This document shows, piece after piece, positions 1-61,136 of a DNA stretch of 64,000 bases. The notes under the pieces are model-generated. The model was not told the origin of the DNA. It ran no database searches and was given only the letters and a program-made list of their open reading frames with translations. Position numbers and translations under genes: made by a program. The stretch spans positions 45,712,728 to 45,776,727 of the forward strand of contig NC_081370.1 of NCBI RefSeq assembly GCF_030684315.1. Reading direction: 5' to 3'. This DNA is from Stegostoma tigrinum. Lineage: Eukaryota. The number at the start of each line of letters is the position of its first letter. Position 1 is the stretch's first letter.

Positions 1-529
1 CCCCCTCTTTTAGTTACTGTTATTGTTCACTGTGACAATTCATAATCGCTATCGGATACAGTGACTGACTTTGCTATTTGACACACTGCTCATGGGCCAA
101 GGTCACTAGTATTTTAATTTAATGATGTCAGCTTTGTCTCACTAGTCTACAATGTCAACACATTATTCAGTGAGGTGCTGACAGAGGTGCCTTTTTATTA
201 ATGAGATGTTAAACTGAAAGTTCATCTGCCTTGGCACGATTTGAAAAAAGAGCAACCTAGTTCTTTGCAGGATCCTGGAAATATCTAAGCATCACTCAGA
301 AAACATATGAGCTGGGTATTATCTCATTACTGTGTGTAGGACCTAACCATTTGCAAATTTACTGCCATTATCCTAAAGTGGCAAAAACACTGAGGTCAAG
401 CCATATAATTCAGGCTAAAACTACTTATTAAGCTTATTATAATGACTCAAATTATACAGAAGATTCAATAGCATGCGAGATAAATAGGCTCTGTCATCAT
501 CAAGCGATAGTAAGAACTGAAGAAGAATT

Positions 530-622
530 TCTGAAGAAAGATCCCGACCCCAAACGTTAACTTTCCTGTGCCTCTGATGCTGCCTGGCTCACTGTGCTCT
601 TCCAGCTCCACACTGTGTTATC
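530..622 (+). mobile_element. Penelope-derived terminus remnant
   Basis: ctgaaga..caaacgttaactttcctg..ctgatgctgcctggc..ccagctccacactgtgttatct is similar to the other copies. Related remnants lie at about 21550-21660, 38720-38880, 39910-40020 and 44885-45020. Confidence 0.7.
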
Positions 623-639
623 TTTACAATAACACCCTT

Positions 640-1800
640 TTTTAATGCTGTTTCTCCATGTGTTTTCTACCAAATTATATTATTTCACACTTCTTTGTTT
701 TGAACTTCATCTGCCACCTATTTGTCCACTTTACAAATAGAATGTGAACATTCTATTGAAATTCTTTGTTGACGTCCTCACTGTTTATAATGTATCTAAA
801 TTATATCATCCGCAGACTTGGAAATTGTCCCTTCCACTCCAATATCAAATCATTAATATGTAACTGGAAAAGGAAAGGTCACAATCCTGGCCGCTGGGAA
901 AATAAACCTTCTTTCAGTCTGAAACTTACTTTTTGTTTCTTATCTTTAAGCCAATATAGCATCCACATTACTACTGTCCCTTTTATTCCATGACCTATAA
1001 CTTTTATGTCTGCTTTTCAGCACTGAATTGAATGTATTTTGGAAGTCCAATGTGTAGCCCACATCAGCAGCATTGTCCTCATCAATCCTCTCTGTTACAT
1101 CTTCAAAAAACTCCAACAAACTAATCAAGCCATAATTTTCTGTTAAGAAATTCTCATTGGTGCACCCTGCTTCACCTATACTTGTCCCCGTGACTATTAA
1201 TTCTACCCAGCATTATTATTTCTATGAGTTAGCCCGTTACCGAATTAAACTAACTGTTCTGTTAATGCCAGGCATTTCCTTACAATCTTTCTGAATAAAG
1301 GAATAACGTTTGCAATTTCCAAGTCCCTTGGCACCACCCCTCTGTCCTGGCAGAATTGAAAGATTATGCCCAGTGCATCTGCAGTTTACATTCCCACTTC
1401 TTTCACTATCCTTTCATGCATTTCATCCAACCCCAATCAGTACCAAAGCTTATCCAAGACTCCCTCTTCATCATTTTTAACCATTCTCCTGACAGTTTCC
1501 CCCTCTGTCATCAGGGCTTGTGTAAAATCAGTTTCATTGGTAAAAGCAGATGCAAAATGTTCATTCAGTATCTCAGCCATGATGCCTGCCTCCATGTCTA
1601 AATCTCCATTCTGCTTCCTAAATGATCTTACTCTTCCTTCTGCTACTCTTACTATTTATGTGTAGGTAAAAGACTTTGGGATTCGCCTTCATATTAGATC
1701 AACACCAATCTCCTTACATGCTCCTTCTTTACTTCTCCTATTTGCCTTTTCACTTTCCTTCTGAACATTTTGCAATGTTGTTGATTCTTGTTGTTTGATG
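640..1800 (-). mobile_element. Highly decayed CR1-type LINE
   Basis: LLEFFEDVTERIDEDNAADV..LDFQ motif in ORF 946..1128. Confidence 0.75.
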
Positions 1801-1869
1801 GTATCTCCAACATATCCTTTCCAGTGCATCTTCCCAAAGTAAATTTGGAATAACAAGATGGCATCTCTT

Positions 1870-2160
1870 TTTTTGTTCATTCACTGGATATGGGCATTGC
1901 TGGATAGACCAGTGTTTATTGCCTATCTCTAACTGCCCAGAGGGCAGTTAAGAGTCAACTACTTTGATGTGGGTCTGAAGTCACATGCAGGCCAGCAAGT
2001 ACAGATGGCAGCTACCTTCCCTATAAGGTGTTCTGTACCATTTGGCTTTTCACCAACAATGAGCAACAGTTTCACAGTCACTGTTAGACTCTTCGTTCCA
2101 GATTCTTAATGAATTCAAAAATCTGACATGATGGAATTCAAACTGAGGTCTCCAGAACAT
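1870..2160 (-). mobile_element. Dispersed SINE-like repeat (other copies at about 29720-30070 plus, 57690-57990 plus, 63700-63800 minus)
   Basis: Shared gggcattgctgg..tttattg..cagttaagagtcaac..gtgggtctg(a/g)agtcacatg sequence across copies. Confidence 0.6.
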
Positions 2161-2161
2161 T

Positions 2162-2334
2162 GAGATAACAAGGTGTAGAGCTGGATGAACACAGCAGGCC
2201 AAGCAGCATCAGAGGAGCAGCAAAGCTGACGTTCTAGCCTTCCTGCTCATCTGATGCTGCTTGGCCTGCTGTGTTCATCCAGCTCTACACCTTGTTATCT
2301 CAAGATTCTCCAGCACCTGCAGTTCCTGCTATCG
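2162..2334. mobile_element. Penelope-derived mini-hairpin insertion
   Basis: Inverted arms of about 60 bp plus a tail. TSD ccagaacatt at 2152-2161 and 2335-2344. Confidence 0.85.
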
Positions 2335-3199
2335 CCAGAACATTCTTTGAACACTCCAAGATTTCTACACCTTACGAATTCTGATATCTTGATAATCACT
2401 GCTTTTAATCTCTTCTATGCTGTAGCATCAGATGCTTAGACCCCGAACTCTGGGGCTCCCTAAACCTCTCCCATCTGGGACTCTATTAAAAGCAGACTTC
2501 TTTGACCATTTCTTAGTCATCCAATCTATTTCCTTACGTGACGTAACAATGTAAAACGCTCACATGAACCTTCTTGGAATGTTTTATGGTTTTAAAATTG
2601 CTGCATAAATTAAAGTTGATATCGTCAAGTGATTAATTCAAAGAATTTATTCCATGTGCTCCATTTTTTACACAAGTCCATGGTGCAGCACTTTACCAAA
2701 TGTCTATACATCACATCAATAACATTACCACTGCCAATTCTTCTTGTTATCTCTTTAAAACCTCCAGCCAGTTAGTTAAACATTATTTGCAGTAAACAAG
2801 TCTGAAATAACTCAATGAAGGCCGAAATCCTGTCACCAAGTCATCCTTTACTTACAAATACATTATATATGACATTAGCTCAGCCAATTTAGAGCCAGCA
2901 TCTAGAGTGAACAAAATCCCTGGCACTCCTGTTTGTATCTGTCAGTCAGGGCTCCCTGATTGGACCAAGTTAACAGCCTGAATTAGGGAACTCACTTTTA
3001 GGGAACTCGCTTTCTGTGAGATCTGCCTGGTTGACTTTGTTACAATCACGAAAATCCGTAGCGGCTTTCCTTATTGAATTTGCATTTGCTCAGATGATTA
3101 TTAATTTTATCCAGAATTTGTTTCTAAAACCTCCCTCACCAGTGAGATTAAATTTACTAATCTATAATTGCAGGACTTGCCTTTACAAGCTTTTTTTTT

Positions 3200-3900
3200 C
3201 TAACATTTGCCAAAATATGCCAAAATATGTCAGTGCCAGGACACAAACCTGTTTGACTCCCAAAGTGACATTTGATCTGACAAAGCTGACCTTAATGCAA
3301 TGAGGAATGAAGATCATGTTGAGCAGCTTTAGCCGGGAGCCAATTTTCTCCAGCAGTTGAAGTAGTCCATCTCTCTTCACTTGAATGAACACCTGAAGGC
3401 AACACATAGTGGTCCTCTTCCTTCATGACAATTCTTTTGCAGTTCCAGGCTGAGAAGATCATGCCAATTATAAACCTTCTGGTTCTGAAAGCACACTTCC
3501 ATTCAGGAGAGATGCATTCAGTCAGAATCTGAAACCTGACAAAGGCAGCACAGACAAATACTTTTCCTGTGATGCTTGCAATAGTTGTTCCAATCACCGC
3601 AGCTGTCTTTGTTCTTGTGTAGGGTTACAATCTCAGCATTGTATAGGCTGAGAAACTGCACCCTCTCCCCAGCAGAGACAGGGACATTCAGGGAATGCTG
3701 CAGGAGTACAAGTTTCCCATCCTTGATGAGTTCAGGCAGTATAATATCAGCTGCTAGTTCTCCGCCCATACCTAATGAATTAATAGCTTTGCTAAGCTCC
3801 CCCACTGTGCATTCTTCACCCAGTTCTGGCATGACTGGCAGGCTTTCTATGCAGGTGATGATGACCTCCTCTATCATTTCTTAGTGTAGAGCTGCTTCTC
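3200..3900 (-). mobile_element. RTE-clade LINE reverse transcriptase fragment
   Basis: ELSKAINSL..DIILPELIKDGK.VLLQH, SITGKVF..RFQIL.E.I.PE..CAFR..R....MIFS and the DLTK region, all frameshifted. Confidence 0.75.
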
Positions 3901-4523
3901 TTGCTAAGGGAACCGTTGCTTTTTAGAGCCTTTCATTCATGCCCTTGACTTCCCCTGTGCCAAAGGACACTGGGAAGTTCTGACTGAGTTCTAAGCGCAT
4001 AGTCACAACCTCTCAGGAAAAGTCAAAACCATGACAAAAACCTTGGCCAAAGAGTTTCGGAAGAGAATTTCAGAGCCAAGGGTCTGGGGAAATAAGCAGA
4101 GCCAGCGGGCCGGGGTAATTACGACCAGAAATTAAAATAAAAAGTCGCAGAGAAATTCAGCAGATCAGGATGCAGCTAGGGTGCAGACACAAGCTGATGT
4201 TTCAGGCATGTTAGGAGATCAGAATTTGAAGTGCACATAGGTTTTTGGATAGAATAGAGGCTGTGAAAAGTTGCAGAAATTGACAGGGGGAAAGCAGTGG
4301 AAGGATTTGAAGATAATGGTAATAAAGTTAAAACTGAGGTGTAGCTGGATGGGAATCATGGGATGAATAGTGAATGGAAGTAGGTGTCTGTTTACATATG
4401 GAGTCTCTTAGAATGCCTGAGTGGTTTTAGACTGTGGGGAATCTGAATCCTGTCTGCAACCATGACTTGCATTGCTGAACAGAAAATTATAATCCTTCCA
4501 ATACTGAAACCATGCTTCAATTC

Positions 4524-5047
4524 CCGCACTTGGAGTATTGCGTACAGTTCTGGTCACTGCATTATAAGAAGGATGTGGAAGCTTTGGAAAGGGTGCAGAG
4601 GAGATTTACTAGGATGTTGCCTGGTAAGGAGGGAAGGTCTTATGAGGAAAGGCTGAGGGACTTGAGGCTGTTTTCGTTAGAGAGAAGAAGGTTGAGAAGT
4701 GACTTAATTGAGACATGTAAGATCATCAGAGGGTTAGATAGGGTGGATAGGGAGCGCCTTTTTCCTAGGATGGTGACGGCGAGCACGAGGGGGCATAGCT
4801 TTAAATAGAGGGGTGAAAGATATCGGACAGTTTCTTTACTCAGAGAATAGTAAGGGAATGGAATGCTTTGCCTGCAATGGTAGTAGATTCGGCAATTTTA
4901 AGTACATTTAAGTCATCATTGGACAAGCATATGGACGTACATGGAATAGTGTAGGTGAGATGGGCTTCAGATCGGTATGACAGGTCGGCACAATATCGAG
5001 GGCTGAAGGGCCTGTACTGTGCTGTTATGTTCTATGTTCTATGTTCT
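4524..5047 (+). mobile_element. CR1/HER1 LINE 3' end (young)
   Basis: HLEYCVQFWSLHYKKDVEALERVQRRFTRMLPG..TRGHSFK with a (gttctat)n tail. Confidence 0.9.
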
Positions 5048-5134
5048 AAACTGCTATCTGACAAAAGCAACACAGCCAAATACTTTGTTCTTATGTTGGT
5101 TTACAATCTCAGCATTATATATAGGCTGAAAAGA

Positions 5135-5572
5135 GAGGATTAGAAGGTTAAGCAATAAGGAGAGGCTGGATAGGCTGGGACTTTTCTCCCTGGAGCATCA
5201 GAGGCTGAGGGGTGACATAATAGAGGTTTATAAAATAATGAGGGGAGTTGATAAAATGAATAACCAAGGTATTTTTCCAAGTGTAGGGGAATCCAAAACT
5301 AGAGGGCATTGATTTAAAGAGAAAGGGGAAAATTTAAAAGGGCAACTTTATCCCACAGAGAGTGATGTGTGTATGGAGTGAGCTGCCAGAGGAAGTGATA
5401 GAGCCGAAGACAATTATAACATACATAAGACATTTGTACATATACATGAAAAGGAAAGGTTTAGACGAATATGGGCCAAACACAGGCAAATGCGGCCAGT
5501 TCAGTTTAGGATGCCTGGGAGGCATGGCAAAGTTGGCCTGTTTCCATGCTGCATGATTCTATGATTCTGTAT
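5135..5572 (+). mobile_element. CR1/HER1 LINE 3' end
   Basis: gagaggctggataggctgggactttt..actagagggcat.. with an (atgattct)n tail. Confidence 0.8.
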
Positions 5573-6400
5573 CTAGTGCAAAGAACAGAAAACTGGAACA
5601 ACAATTGTATATGAAACTTATGAAAGAATCCACTGTTTCACTCAGAATAATACCTTCAGGAACTATCTAAGACTAACCAAAATAGTTTGGGAATTTGGAA
5701 ATGGTTACTAGTGCTCAGTTTTGACAGATCATGGTTTCTTTGCATTTCTTGAAAGTTTATATGACATGATATCTTTCATCAAATGCTAATTATTGCACAG
5801 AAATCAAAGAAAACCTTCCAGATTGTAATTATTATTTTTATTTCTGTAAAGAATTAGCACCACAAGAATGAAATTAATAATAATTGTTAAGCACAGCACC
5901 AAAAGTAAGTTTGCAAAACAATCTTTAAAACTGCATCAAATGTTACATCCAGAACAGTAAAGCCAAAAACCATTAGAGGTAACATTACAAAATAGCAAAA
6001 GATTATGCAACAAATCTCATGTTCAATCTCAGCATCATTTGAATATTAGTTCTTGTTTACACCATTTATTGCATTTAAATGTGTCCCACCGGCCCTTATT
6101 GTGTGCTGAGAGTCTTACGTAATTTATAACCCAGGAGAGAAATATAAACAGGCAGTGGTGAGCTTTACAGCCCCAAGCTAGTGTTGAAGGTCTGCATATT
6201 TGTCAGTTAGATTTGCTATCAACTAGGAAAGAGGCGCCTTCTTTGGGATGGCACTCCGTAGCCTCCCCAGTCTCTCTGCTTCAATTCTGTTCCCCACTAC
6301 ACTGGGGTCTCCCAGCCGTGCCTACCCAAATCCCCTAGGGTGTACTACAGGTTGAGCGAATGGAATCTGCCTTCCTATCTCATCTACTCTTAGAATATGT

Positions 6401-6710
6401 GTGGCATGGTGGCACAGCATCAGGGCCTGAGTTTGATTCCAGCCTGGGTTGACTGTTTGTGTGCATGTTCTCCTCATTTCTGCTGAGTGCTCTGGTTTCC
6501 TCCCACAGGCCAGAGATGTGCAGGTCAGTGGATTTGCCATCCTATGTTGCCCTGTGGTGTCCAGGGATAAGCAGGTAAGTGGATTAGCCATGGGAAATGC
6601 AGGGTTCCAGGGATTGGATAGGGGTTTGGATCGGATGCTTTTTGGTGGGTTGGTGCAGACTCGATGGGCTAAATGGCCTTTTTCTGTATTGCTGGGATCC
6701 TGTGATTCTA
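6401..6710 (+). mobile_element. HE1-type V-SINE
   Basis: tRNA-like head, V-domain tgctctggtttcctcccaca..gatgtgcagg and a CR1-like tail. Confidence 0.75.
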
Positions 6711-7099
6711 ATATTGGGAAAATCTAACAGTTTGGGACAGGAAAACAGTCTGGGCCGATGACTTATTGTCAGAACATTTTGTTTATATCTTTTTGAACTT
6801 TTGTTCTGAATGAGACGCCTTTGACCTCTCTGTACAGAGACTGTCTTTCCTGTTGAGCATTTCCAGTTTACTTTTTATTTCAGGATTCCAGCATCTGCAG
6901 TATATCGACATTGCATAGTATGATGGTATCGTTGGATCACATGACAAGTCTATTAGACTTTTTGTTAAATAAGAAAAAGTACATTGTTTCAGTTAACAAG
7001 AAAGAATCCATACCATGTAGACTATGTAATGCTGACAGGGGTTTGACTAGTAGCTCATCATTTGTTGTGTGTTGTATATATAGTCTGTACACTTATCTT

Positions 7100-7443
7100 G
7101 GAACAAAAACAAAGTTGCTGGAGAAGCTCAGCAGGTCTGGCAGCATCTGTGGAGGAGAAAGCAGAGTTAACGTTTTGGGTCCGGTGACCCTTCCTCAGAA
7201 CTCAATTTTGAGTAATTTAGTTTATGTCTTAGGATTTATTAGAAAATCAATTTGATCCACCTCAAAAACTATGGGTTTCTAATCCTTACAGATCTAAAAA
7301 TTAAAAACCCATTTACATCTACTTTAGAACCCAAGTCCCCAAATAATAATATAAATCTTAATCATACACTGTTCCACTTCTGGACTCCACTCACTTATGT
7401 TCCCAAGATTGAGGAATGATAAAAAGATTTTGTTATCTGAAGA
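7100..7443. repeat. Left arm of the inverted repeat flanking the RAG2 coding exon
   Basis: Reverse complement of 9515-9899. The part 7216-7443 matches 9515-9740 with about 14 mismatches and one 2-nt indel. Confidence 0.95.
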
Positions 7444-7542
7444 CAAGTTTAGCGTAAGCTAGACATCAGAAAGCACGAATATTGCTACGACCCCAGATGT
7501 TAAATTGCAAATGATTTAATTGTCAGTCATTTCCATACAGTT

Positions 7543-9102
7543 TCAATCAAATAGTCTCTTCAGAAAGCTTTTCTTCATTGGTGTCCTTTTCAGAGTGGCT
7601 GGTGATTTCTTACGCGGAGATTTAATTGGTGTTCGCTTTATCTGTTTCTTCTTTTGAGGCGTTTGAATTCCTCTATCGATGTAATGCTCATTGCAAAAAT
7701 ACTGTGTGTTTTCTTGAGAAAACTGAATCAGCTGCGACTCTGCAAGATTCATGCACTGGGCATGTACCCAGTGTCCATCATCACCTCCACTCGAGCAGAA
7801 AATCATTGCAGGTTTATTTAATTCTGTGGAGTAATAAGGTTCCCAGATGTTGACGTTCACATTACATGTGGAGCTGCATTTAATCCAATAACCTTCCTCA
7901 TCAGCATTATCTCGGTTCTCTGCATCATCAGAACCCTCGCCCTCTACTTCAAAGTTAAATTCTTCTGAATCTTCAAAGGTGCTGCATTCTTCTGGATCAG
8001 TAAAGGATTCTTGACTACAAGGAATTTGACTTTCTTCGTCTAATTGCCCAAATTTTGCTATGTAGAAGAAGTTTGCCTCGGCTGCATCTTGTTTGCTTTC
8101 TCCGGGAATGCCAATTAACACTGCATTACTTTCCATGCTGCTACCAAACCAGGTTTTGCTTGCTTTAATATCAGTGGTCCATGCTGGGGGCTCCTTTTCC
8201 AAAATCTGAATGTTGTCGTTCTCCACAGTGATGGTATTGCAAATCATTCGCTTCTTGATCTCGGACTCGTAGCCACCCACAATTATGAATTCATCTTTTC
8301 CAGCTGGGGTCACAATTGCACTGGACACAGAAATGCCGCCTTGCAGTACTGTGCACTGTACACTTGGAGAAGTCCCTAATAAATCAACCTTCAGACAAAG
8401 CAACCTTGTAGGGCGACGATTAGTTTCAATTGAATGACCACCTAATATGTACACTCTGTCAATTTTTGCAATGGCGATATGAAATGAAAACCCATCCTCT
8501 ACTTCGGGAAGTATGTGGGACGTGCAGTGGCCGGTGTTTATATCAATCAGAAAAGCTTCCGGCAAACAATCAACTACACTGTTCCAGTTTTCCGTGGTTC
8601 TTTGCCCTGGGGGCCGAAAACGTCTACCCCCAAACAAGACACATAACATTTGCCCCTTGCACTGAACCACATTGATGCTGTGACCATATCTTCCTTGGGG
8701 AACGTCTCCTTCAAGATTTTTTTCAATGCAACGAAGTGATGTTCTCTTGTTGCCAGTGCTGCTGTAAACCATCATTAAATAAAGTGAATTAGACAAGTCA
8801 TTATTTGGATCTCTCCCGCCATGGATTAAATATAAAGGGCTCTTAGGCTCTGAGGGATCTGAGTAATGTGTTATTGCAGGACAACGCAATGGGGGAAGGT
8901 AACAGGAGTCAGGTGAAAATGAAACCGCTTTCAGTCTGAAACTATGGCCTTTGAGATGAAGAAGAAAAACTCCAGTGCTGCACGATCTTTTTGGCCACCC
9001 TTTCTGACCAAAAAAGAAGACCTCACCGTTAAAATTGAATAAAGAAAAGCCTGGGTAGATGAGTCCAGTTTTGATATTCTCTGAGACCATTTGCAGAGTC
9101 AT
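7543..9102 (-). CDS. RAG2: Recombination activating protein 2 (single coding exon, about 519 aa)
   Basis: ORF 7543..9147 has RAG2 signatures: FFGQKGWPKRSC.TGVF, SCYLPPLRCPA, GRYGHSI, LFGGR, RTTENWNSVVDC, acidic hinge FEDSEEF, PHD GYWIKC..C...MIFCS..HWVHAQCM..YFCNEH and C-terminal KKSFLKRLFD. The true start is probably MTLQMV at 9102, because a minus-strand acceptor (cttcttttcttccacag|) puts the exon start at 9127, making the first ORF residues intronic/UTR. Confidence 0.98.
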   Translation of the reverse strand: MTLQMVSENIKTGLIYPGFSLFNFNGEVFFFGQKGWPKRSCSTGVFLLHLKGHSFRLKAVSFSPDSCYLPPLRCPAITHYSDPSEPKSPLYLIHGGRDPNNDLSNSLYLMMVYSSTGNKRTSLRCIEKNLEGDVPQGRYGHSINVVQCKGQMLCVLFGGRRFRPPGQRTTENWNSVVDCLPEAFLIDINTGHCTSHILPEVEDGFSFHIAIAKIDRVYILGGHSIETNRRPTRLLCLKVDLLGTSPSVQCTVLQGGISVSSAIVTPAGKDEFIIVGGYESEIKKRMICNTITVENDNIQILEKEPPAWTTDIKASKTWFGSSMESNAVLIGIPGESKQDAAEANFFYIAKFGQLDEESQIPCSQESFTDPEECSTFEDSEEFNFEVEGEGSDDAENRDNADEEGYWIKCSSTCNVNVNIWEPYYSTELNKPAMIFCSSGGDDGHWVHAQCMNLAESQLIQFSQENTQYFCNEHYIDRGIQTPQKKKQIKRTPIKSPRKKSPATLKRTPMKKSFLKRLFD

Positions 9103-9514
9103 TGTAGTGGTGAAAAGCTGACAGTATCTGTGGAAGAAAAGAAGCATAAAATGATGTTAGAATTAATATTTATATCAAAATTAATTATTATGGATTCTGA
9201 TGGTGCAGAACTAACCACTTGGCAGCTTTTATTAAGTGCAGAAATGCTGGTTTTGGCTGCAATCTGTGTGATAAATCAACAATTAAAAACTGTCACTTTA
9301 TAGTTCAAAATTCAACTACTGTAGGGTATAAAATTCTTTAACATTATTAAATGAGGAAAATATTGTACTGCATTGATTTTTTTTTGTTTAAATAAATCAA
9401 CTATTTGTCAAGCACAAAGTGTAATTGCTTCCAACCGTATTACTGCAATTCAGTTTCAATAAATTTTCATTCAGCAAACTTAGTTTCATTCCAATTCCAG
9501 TTCAGGACATGCAA

Positions 9515-9899
9515 TCTTCAAATAATAAAGTCTTTTTATCATTCATCTATCTTAGGAACATAAGAGGGTGGAGTCCAGAAGTGGAACAGTGTGATTAAGA
9601 TTTATATTATTATTTGGGGACTTGGGTTCTAAAGTAGATGTAAATAGGTTTTTGATTTCTAGATCTGTAAGGATTAGAAACCCATAGTTTTTGAGGTGGA
9701 TCAAATAGATTTTCTAATAACTCCTAAGACATAAGCTAAACACCTACATAAGCTAATGTTTCAGGTCAGGTGACCCTTCCTGAGAACTCAAAACTGAGTT
9801 CTCAGGAAGGGTCACCGGACCCGAAACGTTAACTATGTTTTCTCCTCCACAGATGATGCCAGACCTGCTGAGCTTTACCAGCAACTTTGTTTTTGTTCC
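9515..9899. repeat. Right arm of the inverted repeat flanking the RAG2 coding exon
   Basis: Pairs with 7100-7443 and carries an extra 46 bp (9741-9786). Its outer part is a Penelope-like terminus. Confidence 0.95.
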
Positions 9900-11979
9900 T
9901 TATTTACAGCATCCTCAGTTCTTTTGGTTTTTAACTAGATAAGCTATATCTGGTGAGATAATTGCTGAGGTGATTATTGAATTCGGGTTTTCGAATCTAA
10001 AAAGCCTGAAGCAGGATTGTTCAGAAGAAATGCAGTCGCGGAATAGTCAAAGCCTGACTAAAGTCAGTGTGTTAACCTTTTTGTGTATCTTGAAGGGAAA
10101 TAAAGAGAATCACATTTGGTGAATGTGCAAAATGCTGCCAAAGGGAAATGTATGTGACCTTGTCAGTTGAATGAGAAATCAGAGAGTGAAATTAGGAGCG
10201 AGGCGTCACTAATGTTGAGTAGCTGTAAAGGATATTTCTGGGAGAAAAAGAATGAATCTTTATTTTTGTCGTTTGTGATAAAGTCTTTAAAAATTGTTAA
10301 TCACACAAATATCACTGCGAATTAATGCATTCGCAGCAAAATAGCTTTGAATATGATGTAGTAATTGGAAATGGTAGCAGTCCAGAAGGAAGAAACAGTT
10401 TAACACTTGGAAATGATCATACTAATCCTACTGGAGTGTTGTTCTGAAATGTACAAGACAAGTTGGACTGGTGTGTGCCATTTGCAAGTATTACTAGATT
10501 TTTCTTTCGGTAATTTCACCCTGCAGGCCTGTTCCATCTTTCAATAATACCATGGCTGATCTGGTTGTGGTCTCAGGTCCACTTTTTATCTGCATCCAAT
10601 ACCTTTGAGTCCCTTGTCTATCAAAAGTCTATCCAAATCAGACTTGAACAAAGACCCAGCTTCCACTACATAAGATTTAGGAGCAGAAGTAGACTATTAG
10701 CACAGGGTAATTCATGTCTCTAATACATACTATATTCTATATATTTAATATGAACATACGGCTCCTACGCATCAGCCTAAATATTCATTGCAGAATACAT
10801 GCCATTATTGATGCAAAAAAATCATAAGGGCCAGAAAGTACAGATTTATGGTAATCAGCAAATTTGGTGATAATATGAGAAATCTTTCTTTATGTAGGGA
10901 GGTAATTTGGAATCAATGGCCTGAAAGGGAAATGAAAACAATTTGATAAGTAGCATTGAATAACTACAGCAAAATGAGAAAAACCTGATGATTTTTTTTG
11001 AGGATGATACAAGCAATGTGGTTAAGGAAAACCAGATCCTCCTTTAATAAATACTGTTACCAAAGGATGGAGAACTCCAAGCATCACAACCCTCTTTCCA
11101 AAATTAGAGGAAGCATTAACCCGGCAGTCAGTGTATTGTCAGAAACAGAGAAGCATTTAAAAACAAAATCCACGAGTAAAATTAACAGCATCTTAGACAA
11201 GTGAAGACCAATTAAGGGAGAGCTGGCAGAGAGTCATAAAGTAGAAATCCTGTTTGACTAATTGGACTGAGGTCTTGATGAAGTAGTGGAGACAAACTGG
11301 ATGAAAAAAGTTTGTCGATGTGTATATGGGTTTCCAAAAGGTGTATGATAGAAGATGACACAGTAGCAAAATTGAACCCCAGCCGGGACAAACAAGGCAG
11401 TAGCATCATGTTTACAAATGCAGAGTGATGCAGTGAAAAGCTGTGTTTTCATATTGCTATGGAATTCCCCAGGGTTCAATAGTGTGTGGGCAAATCTGGC
11501 AAAGGATCTCCAGTCTCCCAACCTTGTCTACCAGGGTGATTCTTTCCTGCAGCCATTTTCCACTGGCTTGTCTCCATCGGTCAATTTATAGGTCTGAATC
11601 TATGACAATGCAACCAGGATTCTGAATGATGTGGCCCGAATACAATTGATCTAACCTTTTCCACACTAACACCTGTTATGATCCTAGCTGACGGTTATAT
11701 TAGACAATTCAGAAAGGAAATCTGACTTGTGGCCGCCATTCACTGAACACAATCACACAGGATTGCCAATGTAATTTTAACATCATAATATTTTATTGCA
11801 GCAGAAAGAATAAAGAGCAATAGACTAATTTTCGGGAGCGCTGCTAAGAGTAAAATAATCAACATATTATAGACTGCATCATCTGATTATTCATTATTCA
11901 GTATAATCTCTTCAAAACACCTTCCTCTTGATTCCGGAACAAATAATCAGTAGCTATATTGCTTTTGGAATTCGATTCC

Positions 11980-13899: not shown

Positions 13900-14620
13900 T
13901 GTGATGCCAGGTATATAGGTGGTGCATCCCAAAGACTAGTGGGTCAAATCAAGTAACACGTCTCTTTGGCTGCTCACAACAAGCAAGGTACTCACTATCC
14001 ACAGCCAGCCTGTCCTTGGAAAACCCACAGCAGTGTCTAAGATTAGATGCGATTCTAAAATTGGATACTTATTGGATAATAAAATGTGAGGCTGAATGAA
14101 CACAGCAGGCCCAGCAGCATCTCAGGGCCTGCTGTGTTCATCCAGCCCCACATTTTATTATCTTGGATTCTGCATTTCCCATTATTACTTATTGGATAAT
14201 CCTGAATGTGCAACAGATTATGCTGACAGCCAATGTATGATAGTTCAGCATGGCCCGCTTGTGTGTACTGGAAGCTTATCACGTGGAGGCCTATTCTTTG
14301 TAGCTAGGAAAAACATGTATATGCACCGTATCTGTTTCAGCCATTTGTTGATTAATTTCTAAGAGCAGTGTCCTGACCAATCATAGCCAACTTGCATAGT
14401 TTGAAACTTAATCAAACCTATCTGTTAACTATCAATTAGCATTATTGGGTATATTATCATTGGCAACATCTCTATCAATCAGAATACACTGGCCAACCAA
14501 TCAGCAATTTTGTTTTCTGCAGCATAAATGTTGGTTTTGCCATTGAATTGGCATTTTTGCAAAACGTCCTGATGAGTACAGTGCAAAAGCTTTGACAAAA
14601 GTAGCCTTTTTCAACAGTAG
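13900..14620 (+). mobile_element. Older, different Penelope-like 3' end (GIY-YIG C-terminus, CCAAT boxes, degenerate hammerhead), interrupted by a mini-hairpin
   Basis: Removing the insert gives CDSKIGYLLDNPECATDY. There are several ccaatca boxes and gtc-CTGATGA-gtacagtgc-AAAA-gcttt-gac at 14566-14596. Confidence 0.55.
14081..14185. mobile_element. Penelope-derived mini-hairpin insertion
   Basis: TSD tacttattggataat at 14066-14080 and 14186-14200. Confidence 0.85.
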
Positions 14621-19480: not shown

Positions 19481-22400
19481 TTTTAAGTGAAGGAGCTCAT
19501 CGCCTCTGGGCTCTTCAATTTGCAGTTAATTTCTTAGATGTAGGCAACTTTTAGGTTTATTATTAAAGCAAAAGCAAAATGTTAACTGACTTGGGTACAT
19601 AAATGAAACTGTGGGTCAGTATAGTATACATTTTTATCTTTGTACATTGGAACTCTAAAATGTCTTTTTTTAAAAGAGGACTAATACACTCAAAAATGGC
19701 TGTGGATATGAATTAAGTGACATTCTGGAGAAAGATAAACCCATGGAATGTCACCTTTGGATACAAAGAGAATGTTACACAACATCCCTTCAAGGTGAAG
19801 AAGAGGCATGTCAAAACAGACTGGACTGTGATCTCATTTGACTATAAAGATAACAAGAGGCTGATGACTCCTACTCAACAGCAAGCTATTCCCTGCACAT
19901 TATGGTGCAAACTGCATTCATGTTTTGTTCTCTTCCCTTTGAAGAATACACAATGACAGTTCAGTGCGCTGATGGGACTGAATGCTGCTGTGTGTACCAG
20001 CTTGGGTTTGAGCATTACCGTACCACAGTCAAAGAACCCGCTCTCAGTCACCCCAGTGTTGTGACAAAAGGGATTCTGTCACTCTTTGTCGTGGAGGTCA
20101 GATAGCTAGCAGTCAGACAAAAGGAAATAGGATCACCAAAGGACTTTCTCTGGCTCTGAATACTAGAATACAGTCGTAGCCAATAGGAATCAGATTGATA
20201 AAATCTCAACTAATCTGCAACCAAGGACCATAAAATTGGCTTTTCAACTCACAACGTTAATTCTACTGATAACCTTCACTGCAACAGCCGCAATTTACGA
20301 CTAATCACTAGTCATAAACAATTCAGAGTCTGAAAGCTTCTTTTTCAACTGTATCTTTTTTGGACTTGCCTCTTCTTTCTAATCTCTGTATGGGTTGAGT
20401 TACTAATTTTTCTATTGTTTGGTAATTGGTCAACTCATTCTTTTGATAATATGTAAGCCTGGAGAAATTGACTCCTTTTAGAACATAAATTCATTTGAGC
20501 CCTGGGAAATGCATCCAAAAGGAAAGGGATCATTTTAAAATTGACCTGTTGTGACCGAGAGGATGGGTGAATAAAAAAAGTGGACACAACATCCCCCCTC
20601 CCCCCCCAATCCATGAGTTTAATGATTTGGGGTGTGGTCATTATGACTGCAAAATGTCGTCGTTCATTGAAATTTTTGCATTTGTGATTAAGCAAACTAA
20701 TTTTGGCAGAAACTTAAACTGTAACCTAACCAGGGCAATTCCTGAATACATGGCCATCACACACTTTGATTATTCCTGGATTGAAAACTCTTTTCTAATT
20801 TATTGTGATTTCTAGCAAAAAAATTTTTATGAAGATATTTGCCCAATTCTGTTGTATGCTTTGGAGGACAATGGTTATGTCTTTATGAAGCTTTTTTTGA
20901 ATTTTAATGGAAATACATGATAATGCTTATTCAGTAACCAGTCAGAATTGACATACGGTCGACAGCTCAGCGAGGTGGTAAATAGATAGTAAATGGTGCT
21001 CAGAGTAAGTTCTAGAAAATATCATACTCTTGATTATAAGGAGGGCATGTGGATAGATGCATTGGATAGTGTCTCTGCCTCTGAGCCAGATCTCCAGATT
21101 TGAGTCCCACCCAGGGATTTAACAACCAAGGAATTCTGTATGTCATAATGTGGCTGAATAATTGAGGATCAAGCTACAAATCCTTCTGGCACATGCCAAC
21201 AGCATGCAGTAATAACAGGAGAAATTGCTGGTCTGTCATGTAACGGAAAGAAAGTTAAGATCTCTACCCTTACTATCCAGAGCTCCAGATGACAAAGTGC
21301 ATGTTGTCACATGCTCAGTCTCCCTGCCTGATATGTAACATGCTGACACCACTCTTGGTTATGAATTGTATAGCATTGACTTTAGACACAATTTGGGGTT
21401 TCTAATGGCAACATTCCATGGCTGTTGTTTAAAGACAAATCCGGAAGATAAAGAACTTGTCATCTTTCTTCTTAGGCAGATCCTTGAGACTAAAAATGAC
21501 TTTCTTTCATTTGGATAAAAATCGGAAGAACGGTGGATGCTGTAAATGAGAAACATAAACAGAAGTTGCAGGAAAAGCTCAGTAGGTTTGGCAGCATCTG
21601 TGGAAAAGAAAATCAGAGTTCACGTTTTGGGTCTGGTGACCTCCCCGAGGAAGGGTTTATGTAATGTTCAGTTCTCAAGGCTTTTTCCTGTCTGTCACTG
21701 ATGGTAGATTATGACTGAAGTTCATACTTCCTGAATTTGGGAATTTTTCATTTCCTTGGGCTCAGTTATTTCTTCCAATGATTATTGGTCACATCTGTGG
21801 GGTGGTGTTTGGAGTAGCCCAACACAAGGAATTGCTTCAAAATTCTTCTGGAGTGCAAGATTTTTGAGACTCTTGGATATATTGGGAAAAATATGAAAAT
21901 GCTGCAGCATGTGAAAAAAAATTCCCTTAAATGTTTTCCTCAAAAGACCGCTGAGGTCTTCAAATTCTTTTCTTTTTAAGAGTTTGATTTATCATCCATA
22001 AGTTGGGTTGAGCTTGGGCTGAAAATGCACCTAGAGCACAACATTTCATCCTTTTTGTCATGATAGATGTTTTGAGGCTGTTATGCTGGCATAGAGTTCC
22101 ATAGAGGACAGTGGTCCCCATTTACTGTGTTTGGAAAGTCAGTCATGAGGAGTCATCAGTTTAAAACAGCTGTTAAGAATGTTGGAGAGGGGTTAGAAGA
22201 AAATGTTTTATGACAGTGTTAGAACATGGAATACTTTGCTAGAGGGTACAGTTGTGACTTGAGTAGTTGCTTTAAAAAAAGTTGATAAATACTTGAAATA
22301 GACAATCATAAGGAACTGTGAAGAGACAGTAAGAACAGCAAACAATTAGATTAAACCGTCTCACTCTGTTTTAAAGGAAAAATAAATCATTTTATTGCTT

Positions 22401-22501
22401 CAGAGATAATGGGAACTGCAGATGCTGGAGATTCCAAGATGATAAAATGTGAGGCTGGATGAACACAGCAGGCCAAGCAGCATCTCAGGAGCACAAAAGC
22501 T

Positions 22502-22529
22502 GACGTTTCGGGCCTAGACCCTTCATCAG
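22502..22529 (-). ncRNA. Minimal type I hammerhead ribozyme motif (mirror copy)
   Basis: Exact reverse complement of 23794-23821. Confidence 0.75.
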
Positions 22530-23095
22530 AGAGGGGGATGGGGGGAGGGAACTGGAATAAATAGGGAGAGAGGGGGAGGCGGACCGAAGATGGAGAGTAA
22601 AGAAGATAGGTGGAGAGAGTGTAGGTGGGGAGGTAGGGAGGGGATAGGTCAGTCCAGGGAAGACGGACAGGTCAAGGAGTTGGGATGAGATTAGTAGGTA
22701 GCGGGGGGTGCGGCTTGGGGTGGGAGGAAGGGATGGGTGAGAGGAAGAACCGGTTAGGGAGGCAGAGACAGGTTGGACTGGTTTTGGGATGCAGTGGGTG
22801 GGGGGGAAGAGCTGGGCTGGTTGTGTGGTGCAGTGGGGGGAGGGGACGAACTGGGCTGGTTGAGGGATGCAGTAGGGGAAGGGGAGATTTTGAAACTGGT
22901 GAAGTCCACATTGATACCATATGGCTGCAGGGCTCCCAGGCGGAATATGAGTTGCTGTTCCTGCAACCTTCGGGTGGCATCATTGTGGCAGTGCAGGAGG
23001 CCCATGATGGACATGTCATCAAGAGAATGGGAGGGGGAGTGGAAATGGTTTGCGACTGGGAGGTGCAGTTGTTTTTTGCGAACTGAGCGGAGGTG

Positions 23096-23199
23096 TTCTG
23101 CAAAGCGGTCCCCAAGCCTCCGCTTCTGCAAAGCGGTCCCCAAGCCTCCGCTTCTGCAAAGCGGTCCCCAAGCCTCCGCTTCTGCAAAGCGGTCCCCAA
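23096..23199 (+). repeat. Tandem repeat of a 28-bp unit, about 3.7 copies, at the palindrome apex
   Basis: ttctgcaaagcggtccccaagcctccgc starts at 23096, 23124, 23152 and 23180 (partial). Confidence 0.95.
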
Positions 23200-23793
23200 A
23201 GCGGAGGCTTGGGGACCGCTTTGCAGAACACCTCCGCTCAGTTCGCAAAAAACAACTGCACCTCCCAGTCGCAAACCATTTCCACTCCCCCTCCCATTCT
23301 CTTGATGACATGTCCATCATGGGCCTCCTGCACTGCCACAATGATGCCACCCGAAGGTTGCAGGAACAGCAACTCATATTCCGCCTGGGAACCCTGCAGC
23401 CATATGGTATCAATGTGGACTTCACCAGTTTTAAATCTCCCCTTCCCCTACTGCATCCCTCAACCAGCCCAGTTCGTCCCCTCCCCCCACTGCACCACAC
23501 AACCAGCCCAGCTCTTCCCCCCCACCCACTGCATCCCAAAACCAGTCCAACCTGTCTCTGCCTCCCTAACCGGTTCTTCCTCTCACCCATCCCTTCCTCC
23601 CACCCCAAGCCGCACCCCCCGCTACCTACTAATCTCATCCCAACTCCTTGACCTGTCCGTCTTCCCTGGACTGACCTATCCCCTCCCTACCTCCCCACCT
23701 ACACTCTCTCCACCTATCTTCTTTACTCTCCATCTTCGGTCCGCCTCCCCCTCTCTCCCTATTTATTCCAGTTCCCTCCCCCCATCCCCCTCT

Positions 23794-23821
23794 CTGATGA
23801 AGGGTCTAGGCCCGAAACGTC
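23794..23821 (+). ncRNA. Minimal type I hammerhead ribozyme motif in the Penelope-like pseudo-LTR
   Basis: CTGATGA-agggtctaggccc-GAAA-C-GTC: intact catalytic boxes and a stem II. Activity is not demonstrated. Confidence 0.75.
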
Positions 23822-26800
23822 AGCTTTTGTGCTCCTGAGATGCTGCTTGGCCTGCTGTGTTCATCCAGCCTCACATTTTATCATTTTATTGCTTACCTGT
23901 TTTTCTCTTCTGAAGATGTCTTGGACTAATTCAGATTAGATGAGATTTAAACTTTTAAAATTGTGCTTACTTATAAGAATGGGGCATGTCTTGATTCTTA
24001 ACCTAACGCTAAATTGGGGTGATTTGATGGCTGTAATCCAGTTGTTGGTGCCCAGTCCAGTTCTTTGTGAAGCACTTTCAAAGTCCCATTGTGCTGTAGT
24101 AAATACACTTTTGTCACCTTGTTTTAGTGAATTATCTCAAAAAAGCTTATGAACATGAAGAAATGTATAACTTGAACATGATTATTTCGAAGTTTGGAAT
24201 ATGTAGTGAGTCGATCACTTGCAAAAATTAGTTTAAGAACTAGAATTCTCACTATTGTAATCTTATGATTATAATAAGTGCAAAATGTCTCTCCCTGATT
24301 GTTTAATCTTCTTTATAATGAGCTTTGCCAAGTGTTACATTTGTCTGTGGTTGTGACTATATGAAGAGCTCTTCTAAGAAAGGGAATTGAACAGATGCCT
24401 ACATTTCTTCAGTTCAAACCACAGAAAGAAAAGCTCTGTGACTTGTTTAATTCATTCATAGTTGAACATTTCTTGAAGATTTAGAGATTTAGATTTGTGT
24501 GTTTAGAGATTATCTTTTTATATTTAAGTATTTGAGTACCATATTTGTGGGCTAGAAAATGGCATGCTGGATCATTGGCTGCAAGTTGTAGCTTGAGGGC
24601 GTCTGATTATAAGTTATAGTAATTTATATTATAAAATTGTAACTAATGCTTAGTGCTCTTAGTTCATATTCAATAAGGTCATCATGTGATGAGTTCTTAA
24701 AAAAAAAACAAGTGGTTTCTAAAAGGCCGATAGTCATGTTAAAATAACTTGTTGGTGAAAGTGGAAACAGATAGGGTTGAATACTGCCACATTTGGAGGT
24801 AATGCAGGGAAATGTGGTTTATTTTTGCAGATGAGAAATATCCTGCAATAAAAAGCAATTTCACCATTAACATTGGTGGTAGTGATAGAACATACGTAAA
24901 TGTTATTTTACTTGAAGCCAAAACCTAGCAGCAGTGAGGACGAAACTCACTAGACTCTGCAGTGTTGTCTTGGTAAATTCATTGATATGTGGTTTCATTT
25001 TACAATGTGCCCTCAAGCCATAAATAATCTTTGTTACAGACAAATCGTATTTACCAAATTTAGTAACATTTCTGAATAAATAATAAATTTGACACCAAAA
25101 TCCCAGGCGTACATAAGGCTATCTAATATGATAAGAGCCCAAGGCTTAGTGTATTGGCATGGGTGAAGGAACAAACAACTATTCACTTAAAAAAAATTAC
25201 GTTTGTGTTCCTTCAACTAAATAAAGCCTTATAACAGTAAATTTTGACATTTTTTGACAGCTCTAATGAACTCGACAGTAATTACTTTATAAATATTTTA
25301 CACACATTTGTGCCTACATTTAACCATTCCAAAGGGCACCTGACCCCCACCAAAGGACATCTTACCTCTCGAGGGTGTTGTGGAACATGATACAAAAGGA
25401 TACCTTGAAACCTCCAAAGGGGTACACTGGCTAATTAAAGATATCTTTAAAATTTAAACCTTCTCTTACCCAGGTCTAATCTGCACACCCTGGTTTCATG
25501 TCTCTGAGCTGCCAAGAACCAAATTAAATGGAGGCAATTGATGATTTAAATACTTAACTGCATCCATGAGTCATGTATGTACAGATTCTGATTGGACTAC
25601 ATTCCCAGTCCTGCAAAAATAGGTAGTGCTGTGTTCAGGGCAAAAATCCAAGCCTTGGTTTTGGTCTTGCCTGTTGGTAAAACTTGTGTTTCTGAATCAG
25701 CAGATCTTGGGATCAATATCCATCCCAGAAAAAAAGGCTGATACCCACCATGTATTACTCAGGAAATGCTGGTTTGTTAAAGTTGATGTTTGATTGAGAT
25801 ATTAAACTGAAGACCCATCTACTATTTGAACACATGTATTTCATGGCCAGCAGTTTTCTGAGTGTCCTATCATTTATATATCCCTTGGGAATCATCATTA
25901 GAGGAGATTATCTGTGAAATCTAACTGTGCGCAATATATTTGTCACCTTTCCATCAATTACAGTAGTAACCACTAATTCAGAGAACTCAATTAAATGTGA
26001 AGTACTGTGACATATCTTGTGGCTTTAAGAGGCACTGTACAAATGAAATTCCTTTTTAAATTCATGCCATCATTTGTGTTGCTCTATGCTATGTAATGTT
26101 GACTGTTTGGGCTATTTACTGTGACCAAGAAACACCAAATACTAAGTCAGAATAAAGAGCCTTCAATCTCGTGTTCGTATGTTCACAGAGGGTAACTGGT
26201 GATCAGACAATTTGATGGTACATATTTACTGTTTTACCCTCTTTCTGCTATACGTACTTTTATATTTGATGATGTGACAATTCTACCGAACTATAAACAA
26301 GATAAGGAACAAAATAAACAAGGGATTTCAGCCTTGTGTGCTTGTGAATGGCCTTCTACCTGTGCTATACAACTGTCCCTTTGCCACCTTCCCCAGCTTC
26401 TCTATGGCCCTTTCTTCAGAAAGACTGAAGGGTCACAGCTTTGCCCCTTTCACAATCTGCATATTCTTTCTTGTATTACTTTTGAATGCAGATGATTTTG
26501 TACATGCCCACTGACGAGAGTGTGACTGTGCTTTTAGTGGTAGATAAACATGACGTGTGCTTGTCTATGAGACTTTGCTGAGTGAAAACTGTATTATGAA
26601 TGCTTCCTTAATTTAGTTTTTACGAGCTGTTACTGCAGATGTTTGAAATAGGAAGAGTTGTGTGGCAGCTGAGGTCCTGTCCGCTTGTTGGAGACCTAAG
26701 AAATCGTGTGACTTTTTTTTTTGAAGATGCTTCGTGAATTCTCCTAGCATGCAGCACATTTCCACAACTGACAGTACCAAAACAGTTTAATGAGATTGTT

Positions 26801-34000: not shown

Positions 34001-34153
34001 TTACCTCTAAGACCCGGGACATCTGGTCCTTTTCTCTTCATGCTTTACGTGGTGCTAGGTGTAAACTAGTACCCAGTTTTATGGAACTAGCTTGAAAATG
34101 AGTAATATTAAAGGCTCCTTTGTTGCATCTAGTGAGCTTTCATTCTTTTTCAG

Positions 34154-34287
34154 AGGACTTGAAGAAACAAAAGACATCATCTCCTGATGGTGACAGCATA
34201 GCAGATGATGAATACAAACTAACTCAGAGGGTGTTGTTGGAAAATTCAGTCCAGATTGAAGGAGAGCTGCCCAAGGATGGCAAGAAG
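34154..34287 (+). CDS. IFTAP: NWC/IFTAP coding exon 2
   Basis: Acceptor tcattctttttcag|, phase-1 compatible, open frame (E)DLKKQKTSSPDGDSIADDEYKLTQRVLLENSVQIEGELPKDGKK. The 3' end is inferred at a GC donor AAG|gcaagt (phase 0) and is uncertain. Confidence 0.65.
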
Positions 34288-35139
34288 GCAAGTTATAAAT
34301 TAGAAGTAGATTGAATTTATGTTTGGATTCAATATAGTTGTAACTTGGTAAATTCTTTTTTAAATGCAGAGGGGCATACACAAGAACTGCATGAGGAGAT
34401 TGAAACTGAAAGTGGGGGCTTTTTAAAGTGCATTTACTGTTTTATATTGATATTCATAATTGATATACATTTGCCAAAAAGTTGTTCAGTTCGTAATTGT
34501 TCAGCATACTTTAAGATAAGCAAGACTACAGTCATGCAAAGAAATTTGAAAAGTTTACAAAGTGCCTCAATTTTGGGCTGTTCACATTTTGTTTTTCTGC
34601 CTAGCAAAGTTATACCAGTATAATGGCAAATGACAGAGTAGTTTTAAGAGATGTTTGAGTACTATTGATTAAGCACTCAGTGCTGATGACCGCATTTAAA
34701 GACTGATTTTAGAGGAATACTGACACCCTAATAGCAGATTTCACTTTAACGTGGAATTATTTTGAAATTGGGTTAACAATTACATCTCCACAGACAATTT
34801 AGCTTCATCATATTGTCTGTCTCAGTAATTACTTAAAGCTAGCATATTAGCGGAGTTTGTGGCACGGTGGTCGTGACCTATCTCTGAACGAGGTGGCTTC
34901 GTGTTAAGTCCTAAGTGTTCCCTAAAAGTCTGTTGGAACAGGTTGGTTAGTGTTTGACTTCCTTCTTGCCTGAACAGGAAAGATTTTAAAAAATGTTAGA
35001 TCTGTATTTATCTGGACCTCAGGATGTTCTAAACTGCTTTAGAGCTAATGAAGTTTTCAATTTGCAGAATGGCCACTTGAAGCTAATGTGACATTTGTAA
35101 AATATATGACCAGTGTCTGTCAGCCAGTCTATTCAAAAA

Positions 35140-41927: not shown

Positions 41928-42408
41928 CGGATAAACACAGCAGGCCAAGCAGCATCACGGGGCGGCACAGTGGCTCAGCCTCAGAGCACCAGGGACCCAG
42001 GTTCGATTCCAGCCTCCGGTGACTGTCTGTGCGGAGTTTGCACATTCTCCCTGTGTCTGCATGGGTTTCCTCTGGGTGCTCTGGTTTCCTCCCACAGTCC
42101 AAAGATGTGCAGGCTACGTGGATTGGCCTTGCTAAATTGCCCGTAGTGTTCAGGGGTGTGTGAGTTATAGGGGGATGGTCTGGGTCGGATGTTTCGAGGG
42201 GCAGTATGGACTTGTTGGGCCAAAGGGCCTGTTTCCACACTGTAGGTAATCTAATCAGAGGAGCAGGAAGGCTGACATTTTGATCCTAGACCCTTCTGAA
42301 ACGTCAGCTTTCCTGCTCCTCTGATGCTGCTTGGCCTGCTGTGTTCATCCAGCTCTACACATTGTTACCTCAGATTCTCCAGCATCTGCAGTTCCTACTA
42401 TCTCTGAT
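41928..42408. mobile_element. Penelope-derived mini-hairpin with a nested HE1-type SINE (about 41958-42255, plus strand)
   Basis: TSD acattgtagaata at 41915-41927 and 42409-42421. A SINE head ggcggcacagtggctcag..ggttcgattcc and V-domain gggtttcctctgggtgctctggtttcctcccacagtccaaagatgtgcagg interrupt the left arm. Confidence 0.85.
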
Positions 42409-60923: not shown

Positions 60924-61136
60924 AACACAGTGTGGAGCTGGAGGAACACAGCAGGCCAGGCAGCTTCAGAGGAGCAGGAAAGTTGTTTCGAGTCGGGATC
61001 CACCCCATTTCTGAAGAAGGGTCCCTGCCCAAAACATCAGCTTTCCTGCTTCTCTGATGCTGCCTGGTCTGCTGTGTTCCTCCAGCTCCACACTGTGTAA
61101 TCTCAGAATCCAGAATGGCAGTTCTCACTGTCTCCT
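60924..61136. mobile_element. Penelope-derived mini-hairpin insertion
   Basis: TSD gtcatgggat at 60914-60923 and 61137-61146, with a degenerate hammerhead ctgaaga..aaaacatc. Confidence 0.85.

Follow-up and report, generated by a model that had tools for sequence, protein, structure and literature searches.

In a 64,000-nt stretch of the genome of Stegostoma tigrinum (contig NC_081370.1, positions 45,712,728 to 45,776,727, forward strand; hereafter the window), the coding exon of RAG2 lies in the loop of a long inverted repeat, one arm of which falls in the 3' untranslated region (3'UTR) of the gene and the other in the intron upstream of the exon. Such an arrangement raises the question of where the repeat comes from, and whether it does anything to the gene that it encloses. 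Contigs from related sharks give a large part of the answer, since two related species lack the arm downstream of RAG2 (the left arm) at the orthologous site, whereas both have the arm upstream of the exon (the right arm). The left arm is thus probably a local, templated, inverted insertion that was copied from the right arm in the lineage of S. tigrinum, and it is likely to be a nearly neutral structural variant now.

The repeat and its distribution among related sharks

The inverted repeat that flanks the RAG2 coding exon is genuine. In a gapped alignment, 7100-7443 is the reverse complement of 9515-9899 with 320 matching and 22 mismatching positions and two indels of 43 and 2 nt (45 gap columns), i.e. 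93.6% identity outside the gaps and a longest perfect run of 53 nt, and the blastn E-value is 1e-121. The original prediction, made from the letters of this stretch, had described arms of ~93% identity around the exon, the left one ending 100 nt past the stop codon and the right one lying ~390 nt upstream of the splice acceptor, with a loop of ~2.07 kb, and all these figures stand (Table 1). The acceptor AG itself is found at 9129-9128 and is preceded by a polypyrimidine tract. The 43 extra nucleotides of the right arm are the second half of a 40-nt hairpin (9751-9790/9795-9834) that the left arm does not have in full. As for the gene, its nearest named relatives are those of orectolobiform sharks, Rhincodon typus (95.4%) and Chiloscyllium plagiosum (93.1%).

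Table 1. Positions in the window of the RAG2 exon, the two arms and their parts
Feature	Position	Strand	Description
RAG2 open reading frame (ORF)	7543-9147	minus	Pfam RAG2 (6.9e-145) and RAG2_PHD (1.4e-39)
RAG2 coding sequence (CDS)	7543..9102	minus	519 aa and stop, one exon; start at 9102, inside the longer ORF
Left arm	7100..7443	plus	in RAG2 3'UTR; ends 99-100 nt past the stop codon; read as a lineage-specific inverted copy of the right arm
Right arm	9515-9899	minus	intronic, ~387 nt upstream of the RAG2 acceptor
Loop	7444..9514	minus	2071 nt: 99 nt of 3'UTR, RAG2 CDS, ~25 nt of exonic 5'UTR, 386 nt of intron
Gapless inverted block 1	7216-7367/9589-9740		152 nt, 95%
Gapless inverted block 2	7100-7213/9786-9899		114 nt, 93%
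Gapless inverted block 3	7366-7443/9515-9592		78 nt, 90%
Left arm, inner part	7216..7443	plus	copy of low-copy intron sequence, outside the module
Right arm, inner part	9515..9740	minus	226 nt; ancestral intron sequence, present in species A, B and C
Left arm, module part	7100..7213	plus	multi-copy Penelope-type module, lacking the ~45-nt family end
Right arm, module part	9786..9899	minus	Penelope-type module
Stretch found in the right arm only	9741..9785	.	43 nt in the gapped alignment; inverted truncated module fragment pairing with 9795-9834
Natural module end of the right copy, outside the inverted repeat	9900..9945	minus	in register with copies 21509-21649 and 44884-45018
Segment absent from the orthologous site in species B and C	7103..7442	.	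340 nt; joint 7102->7443

For the comparison among species we used public Logan De Bruijn contigs of the window's species (species A, two samples) and of two related sharks, species B (a DNA run) and species C (an RNA-like run), the latter two being compared by means of alignment summaries. In species B, one contig of 2811 nt covers 6655-7102 and then 7443-9779, at a non-coding divergence of ~6-9%, and in species C one contig of 661 nt covers 6640-7102 and then 7443-7602. The right arm, including its inner part, its hairpin and its module, is present in both species; another contig of species C reaches 9781 on that side. Splicing does not explain the gap, because its ends are unlike intron boundaries on either strand and because species B is represented by DNA. 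We therefore take the right arm to be ancestral and the left arm to have been inserted in the lineage of species A. At the left site species B and C carry 15 other letters (read directly for C and deduced for B from the record coordinates 2349-2363), so that ~15 nt present there in both are absent from species A.

In both samples of species A, a contig of 2287 nt covers 7335-9621 with 0-1 mismatches, and thus holds the exon together with the inner 108 nt of each arm. It stops symmetrically at the 53-nt perfect run that the arms share, which is expected, since a De Bruijn graph must break at an inverted repeat. Another contig (540 nt, 6588-7127), which has single-copy depth, crosses the left outer junction 7099/7100, and the inner junction 7443/7444 is likewise bridged by contigs of species A. 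None of the species A contigs from the two samples contains the empty left site, and the insertion is thus apparently homozygous in both.

Composition of the arms and origin of the left one

Each arm combines an inner part of ~228 nt with an outer part of ~114 nt. A blastn search found no third copy of the inner 228 nt in the 64-kb window, as had been noted, while the outer part has many copies there. The inner sequence has a summed contig depth of 3-8x single copy, near that of other non-coding bins, and the outer part ~1e5x the single-copy level, a sum that is not a copy number and is to be read only as "very many". This outer part belongs to a family of repeated modules with 27 nhmmer profile matches in the window. 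The family usually ends on the inner side at ~7201/7202, beyond which the genomic copies enter unrelated sequence, as loose contig ends indicate, and the inner 228 nt are therefore not part of the module. On the outer side the family usually runs ~45 nt past the edge of the repeat at 7100; the right copy keeps this extension whereas the left copy does not have it, and the consensus of thousands of loose contig ends at 7112-7116 carries the same ~45 nt as 9900-9945. The original prediction had noted that the pair could be two independent insertions if the 228-nt core were a high-copy element. Judging from contig depth the core is low-copy, so that such a reading is not favoured.

The outer part had also been called Penelope-like, and the architecture of the module bears this out, though Rfam finds no hammerhead in it. 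The minimal hammerhead ribozymes (min-HHRs) in the pseudo-long terminal repeats (pLTRs) of Penelope-like elements (PLEs) have CUGANGA...GAAA followed by GUH, a short helix I, a long helix II that is bulged 5', and no helix III (PMC4209133). The module matches this layout, with helix I short, a bulged base after CUGANGA, a helix II of 5 bp, then GAAAC and GUH, and again no helix III, the best-kept copies (22416-22530 and 23793-23889) reading CUGAUGA-A-(helix II)-GAAAC-GUC. The core of the left arm, on the minus strand and hence in RAG2 sense, reads GAGUU-CUGAGGA-A-GGGUC-ACCG-GACCC-AAAAC-GUU-AACUC, with GAAAC mutated to AAAAC; that of the right arm, on the plus strand, is the same except that it keeps GAAAC and has CUGAGGA mutated to CUCAGGA. 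Neither the arms nor the whole window gave an Rfam hammerhead at E<=1, and the best copy gave none at E<=10; the Rfam hammerhead models include helix III, which min-HHRs do not have. Sub-threshold Rfam matches to plant miRNAs and to ManX coincide with fold-backs of the module. Head-to-head inverted pairs of modules occur at 7 of the ~20 loci in the window, and head-to-head inverted truncated copies are typical of PLEs (PMC8557442). Given that there is no Rfam match, it is this pairing habit together with the motif layout on which the Penelope-like assignment is based. No ORF with reverse transcriptase (RT) and GIY-YIG was found in the window, ORFs of >=150 aa other than RAG2 have no Pfam match, and neither do the 114-aa ORF overlapping the left arm, two other ORFs, or the ORFs on both strands of a palindrome at 22.4-23.9 kb (described below). 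The module here behaves as a short non-autonomous or solo sequence.

The history that we favour would be as follows. In the old state, common to at least three related shark species, a Penelope-type module with the usual inverted fragment would have stood in the RAG2 intron beside low-copy intron sequence. In the lineage of species A only, an inverted copy of the 385-nt stretch 9515-9899 would then have been placed 2.1 kb away, in the 3'UTR of RAG2; besides the hairpin, this stretch takes in 226 nt of intron and, of the ~150 nt of the module, 103-114 nt. The insertion would have added 340 nt, with one half of the hairpin left out and the ends joined by microhomologies of 3 nt (GGA) and 1 nt (A). 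Either a skip during copying, with the polymerase slipping across the stem, or a later deletion would explain the missing hairpin half. The probable mechanism is a template switch at the DNA level, during replication or double-strand-break repair, of the kinds known as break-induced replication mediated by microhomology (MMBIR), fork stalling and template switching (FoSTeS) or synthesis-dependent microhomology-mediated end joining (MMEJ): a free 3' end would invade sequence close by, either on its own strand or on the sister chromatid, copy it, and return. Thereafter the two arms would have diverged like neutral DNA.

Several observations point to such copying. The segment absent from species B and C (7103-7442) agrees with the limits of arm homology (7100-7443) within 3 nt at one end and 1 nt at the other, a coincidence that copying predicts and that a deletion does not. 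The copied unit starts in plain intron and breaks off within the module, leaving out the last 45 nt, which makes it a segmental copy rather than a transposon. There is no target-site duplication at either copy and no tail; a 4-nt ACAA overlap in the window's own sequence was considered as a target-site duplication and rejected, as species B and C carry 15 other letters at this site. To find a low-copy sequence 2.1 kb from its only near relative is, we infer, what one would expect of local templating and very improbable for an insertion drawn from anywhere in the genome. MMBIR-type template switching at microhomology is known to yield templated insertions (PMC8421209), and what characterises these is found here as well, namely a nearby donor that has been retained, arbitrary end points, microhomology at the junctions and the lack of a target-site duplication. 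The original prediction had listed a local duplication among its options, and the data fit that option.

Obviously, some points weigh against this history. Sequence alone cannot separate a DNA polymerase from a reverse transcriptase that copied a local transcript, and 340 nt is long for typical templated insertions by polymerase theta. The inner bins have a few-fold excess of depth, and a few further genomic copies of the inner sequence may exist, among which there could be a nearer relative of the left arm than the right one. The outer junction is bridged by contigs over 28 nt only, and the 22 arm substitutions are unpolarised, species B and C having been seen as alignment summaries. Finally, a divergence of 6.4% dates the event near the species split, where lineage sorting may have played a part.

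This divergence, 22 of 342 aligned sites in addition to the two indels, is about that of the non-coding flanks between species (5.8-8.7% for A against B, 6.6-8.1% for A against C), meaning that the copy was made early in the lineage of species A, or that the copying was error-prone, and that the arms then drifted. It had been proposed that gene conversion keeps the arms similar, which is not borne out, both because the arms differ about as much as neutral sequence does and because of a small deletion. The dinucleotide TA after 9591 is found in species B and C and is lost from the right arm of species A, where adding it gives exactly the sequence of the left arm; at this point it is therefore the left arm that is ancestral, and the deletion that the right arm later underwent did not pass to it. 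Nothing in the two sequences suggests concerted evolution or selection for pairing.

One may also consider explanations other than a template switch in DNA. We see a small chance that the copy was local and RNA-mediated, a plus-strand transcript (antisense to RAG2, sense to the module) running from the intron through the module having been reverse-transcribed by the RT of a Penelope-like element or a long interspersed nuclear element (LINE), with priming inside the module and insertion nearby, as in a 5'-transduction. The copied unit does break off in the module's 3' part, with ~45 nt still to go, reverse transcription of PLEs begins internally in RNA (PMC11167929), PLEs yield complex inverted structures and can mobilise host sequence (PMC8557442), the enzyme could jump across the hairpin, and the extreme abundance of the module means that a matching RT has been active in the lineage. 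However, retroposition gives no reason for landing 2.1 kb from the source, neither a target-site duplication nor a tail is seen, and most genomic copies of the module keep the 45-nt end, as a normal family insertion would. Moreover, both the module and its min-HHR core are already degenerate in the source copy, and the A>G bias towards one strand that an edited RNA intermediate would leave is not seen, the arm differences being 13 transitions that go both ways and 9 transversions. The absence of the 45-nt end from the left copy, together with that of a target-site duplication, also speaks against two independent insertions, in opposite orientation, of a composite transposable element with a 228-nt body. 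This we consider highly improbable, even though the outer part is high-copy, the left site is a clean presence/absence difference between species, and the excess depth of the inner bins would agree with it: the inner depth is nevertheless near the ordinary non-coding background, the window holds no third copy, most modules give way to unrelated sequence at ~7201/7202, and a chance landing within 2.1 kb of such a rare relative is very improbable.

If instead the inverted repeat were ancestral, and the left arm had been deleted in the lineages of species B and C, an arm divergence as large as the species divergence would follow naturally, and one deletion would be enough if B and C are sisters. 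Yet the missing segment fits the homology limits of the arms in a way that a random deletion would not, and both species carry the same number of other letters (15) at the site, so that we regard this as barely credible. Least likely of all is a falsely duplicated inverted segment in the assembly, to which we assign next to no probability. Inverted repeats on abundant Penelope-type sequence do trouble assemblies (PMC8557442), and a perfect 1.45-kb palindrome elsewhere in the window shows that this assembly contains such structures; on the other hand, independent k-mer contigs from two samples hold the inner parts of both arms around the exon with hardly a mismatch and break exactly at the perfect run that the arms share, and 22 differing sites with two indels are unlike an artefact of collapsed or duplicated reads.

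Possible consequences for RAG2

The RNA-like contigs of species C bear on where the insertion lies with respect to the transcript. Depth in this run is 660-2500 across the exon and downstream of it and 31 in the intron, and it is high across 6000-7602, so that the 3'UTR of RAG2 would seem to be ~1.2 kb long or longer. Since high depth continues past the exon and the insertion site as far as 6000 or beyond, the site itself falls in the RAG2 3'UTR. There is no ORF of >119 aa in 1-7200 of the window, and RAG1 is therefore not within 7.5 kb downstream of RAG2 here. The proximal 3'UTR has other features as well: an ATTAAA stands 23 nt past the RAG2 stop, and just behind 7535, 8 nt after the stop, species B and C have 24 extra nucleotides that the window's species does not have, a second lineage-specific change in this region.

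As RNA, the two arms are predicted to form 321 intermolecular pairs at -540 kcal/mol, compared with -204 +/- 4 kcal/mol for shuffled sequences. Because the right arm is intronic and the left arm belongs to the mature 3'UTR, only unspliced RNA can hold both. The left arm further carries an AATAAA at 7240-7235 (minus strand, RAG2 sense), 303 nt after the stop, where its right-arm counterpart reads AATAAC. Inverted Alu pairs (IRAlus) in primate genes form double-stranded RNA (dsRNA), are subject to adenosine-to-inosine (A-to-I) editing and can affect retention or back-splicing, and by analogy with them A-to-I editing of the left arm is plausible. That a ~320-bp duplex between intron and 3'UTR, particular to this species, is in fact edited in the pre-mRNA, or alters the choice of RAG2 3' end, nuclear export or dosage, is a prediction from the pairing model that we consider unlikely; the added AAUAAA could contribute to effects of this sort. 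Were it to hold, the duplex would be a natural experiment on how dsRNA is handled in the precursors of lymphocytes in a cartilaginous fish.

It is very unlikely that the repeat is maintained for a function, be it a pre-mRNA duplex that draws in ADAR or acts on export, splicing or the formation of the 3' end, or a switch by which recombination turns the exon round. The strength of the predicted pairing, the AATAAA supplied by the left arm, and the right-arm region being represented in the species C run at ~3% of exon depth, as expected of pre-mRNA, would all be in keeping with a functional duplex. The repeat is, however, limited to one species, its arms diverge about as fast as neutral sequence, have acquired indels and are not homogenised, and the right arm is spliced out. 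With regard to a switch, recombination between the arms would reverse the exon and thereby inactivate a gene essential to immunity, it should be rare given a longest perfect identity of 53 nt, and no recombination signal sequence (RSS) or recombinase site is at hand. A search of 6900-7650 and 9300-10100 for an RSS (heptamer CACAGTG with <=2 mismatches, 12/23 spacer, nonamer ACAAAAACC with <=3 mismatches) returned none, where shuffled sequences lead one to expect 0.35-0.40. The k-mer contigs break inside the arms and are hence silent on the orientation of the exon. The lack of any RSS-like site near the arms and the absence of the left arm from two related species also agree with the earlier statement that this repeat is not the terminal inverted repeat (TIR) of the ancient RAG transposon, which would be common to jawed vertebrates.

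Other inverted structures and relation to known systems

The window contains further inverted structures. A near-perfect palindrome of 1.45 kb lies at 22436-23887, with arms of 455 nt (100% identity) and 250 nt (97%) around a 73-nt centre with ~28-nt tandem units; each arm opens with a Penelope-type module (intact CUGAUGA...GAAAC-GUC), which is followed by G-rich sequence. It is either a Penelope-type inverted insertion or a fold-back of the assembly. Head-to-head fold-backs of the module, with differing break points, are found at 2151-2322, 14071-14175, 42254-42391, 60916-61115 and 62711-62894. Such fold-backs explain the sub-threshold Rfam matches to MIR2118_2, MIR533, MIR528 and mir-761, which we rejected as miRNA genes. 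Nested, diverged inverted pairs in 32241-36527 (32241-32330/36438-36527 at 78% and 33262-33403/35221-35362 at 72%) suggest another large and old inverted structure.

Our literature search found no report of a RAG2 inverted repeat in sharks. These results remove from consideration a relic of the ancient RAG transposon, a conserved regulatory hairpin and arms maintained by gene conversion. What remains is a dated and well-delimited local templated inverted insertion that became fixed in the germ line of a vertebrate and lies in the 3'UTR of a gene essential to immunity. The left arm can be used as a presence/absence marker among orectolobiform sharks, and the RAG2 locus is a place to check the editing of a young pair of dsRNA-forming arms. 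Moreover, with Penelope-type modules as abundant as they are in this genome, a segmental copy can pass for a pair of transposons.

Among known systems, the TIRs of RAG/ProtoRAG transposons resemble the present case in that an inverted repeat flanks a RAG gene, but here the left arm is species-specific, no heptamer-spacer-nonamer lies near the arm ends, and only the RAG2 coding exon is enclosed rather than RAG1 and RAG2 together. The likeness to IRAlus is that two arms of ~300 nt in opposite orientation, each containing retroelement sequence, lie ~2 kb apart in one transcription unit and are predicted to pair. Unlike IRAlus, the RAG2 pair arose by local copying of one arm, if our reading is right, and not by two insertions, and its arms lie in an intron and the terminal exon, so that the mature mRNA keeps one arm and back-splicing is impossible.

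Insertions of PLEs are known in which an inverted 5'-truncated copy occurs together with a 30-40-nt tail (PMC8557442; PMC11167929). The module with its min-HHR architecture and the inverted fragment in the right arm are reminiscent of these. So is the left copy, which leaves out the last ~45 nt of the family, roughly the length of a PLE tail. In contrast to them, the RAG2 arms are not adjacent but separated by 2.07 kb that include a host exon, two thirds of each arm is host intron that does not belong to a PLE, and the window has no RT/GIY-YIG ORF. The insertions ascribed to MMBIR, FoSTeS and synthesis-dependent MMEJ differ from the RAG2 copy in that most of those reported are shorter than 340 nt, and in that the RAG2 copy is fixed in a species rather than somatic or de novo. 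What they share with it is a nearby inverted copy, short microhomologies, an intact donor and no target-site duplication (PMC8421209); a few target nucleotides also appear to be missing at the RAG2 site. The RAG2 repeat is probably, then, a species-specific inverted templated duplication, built in part on a Penelope-type module and neutral in its effect.

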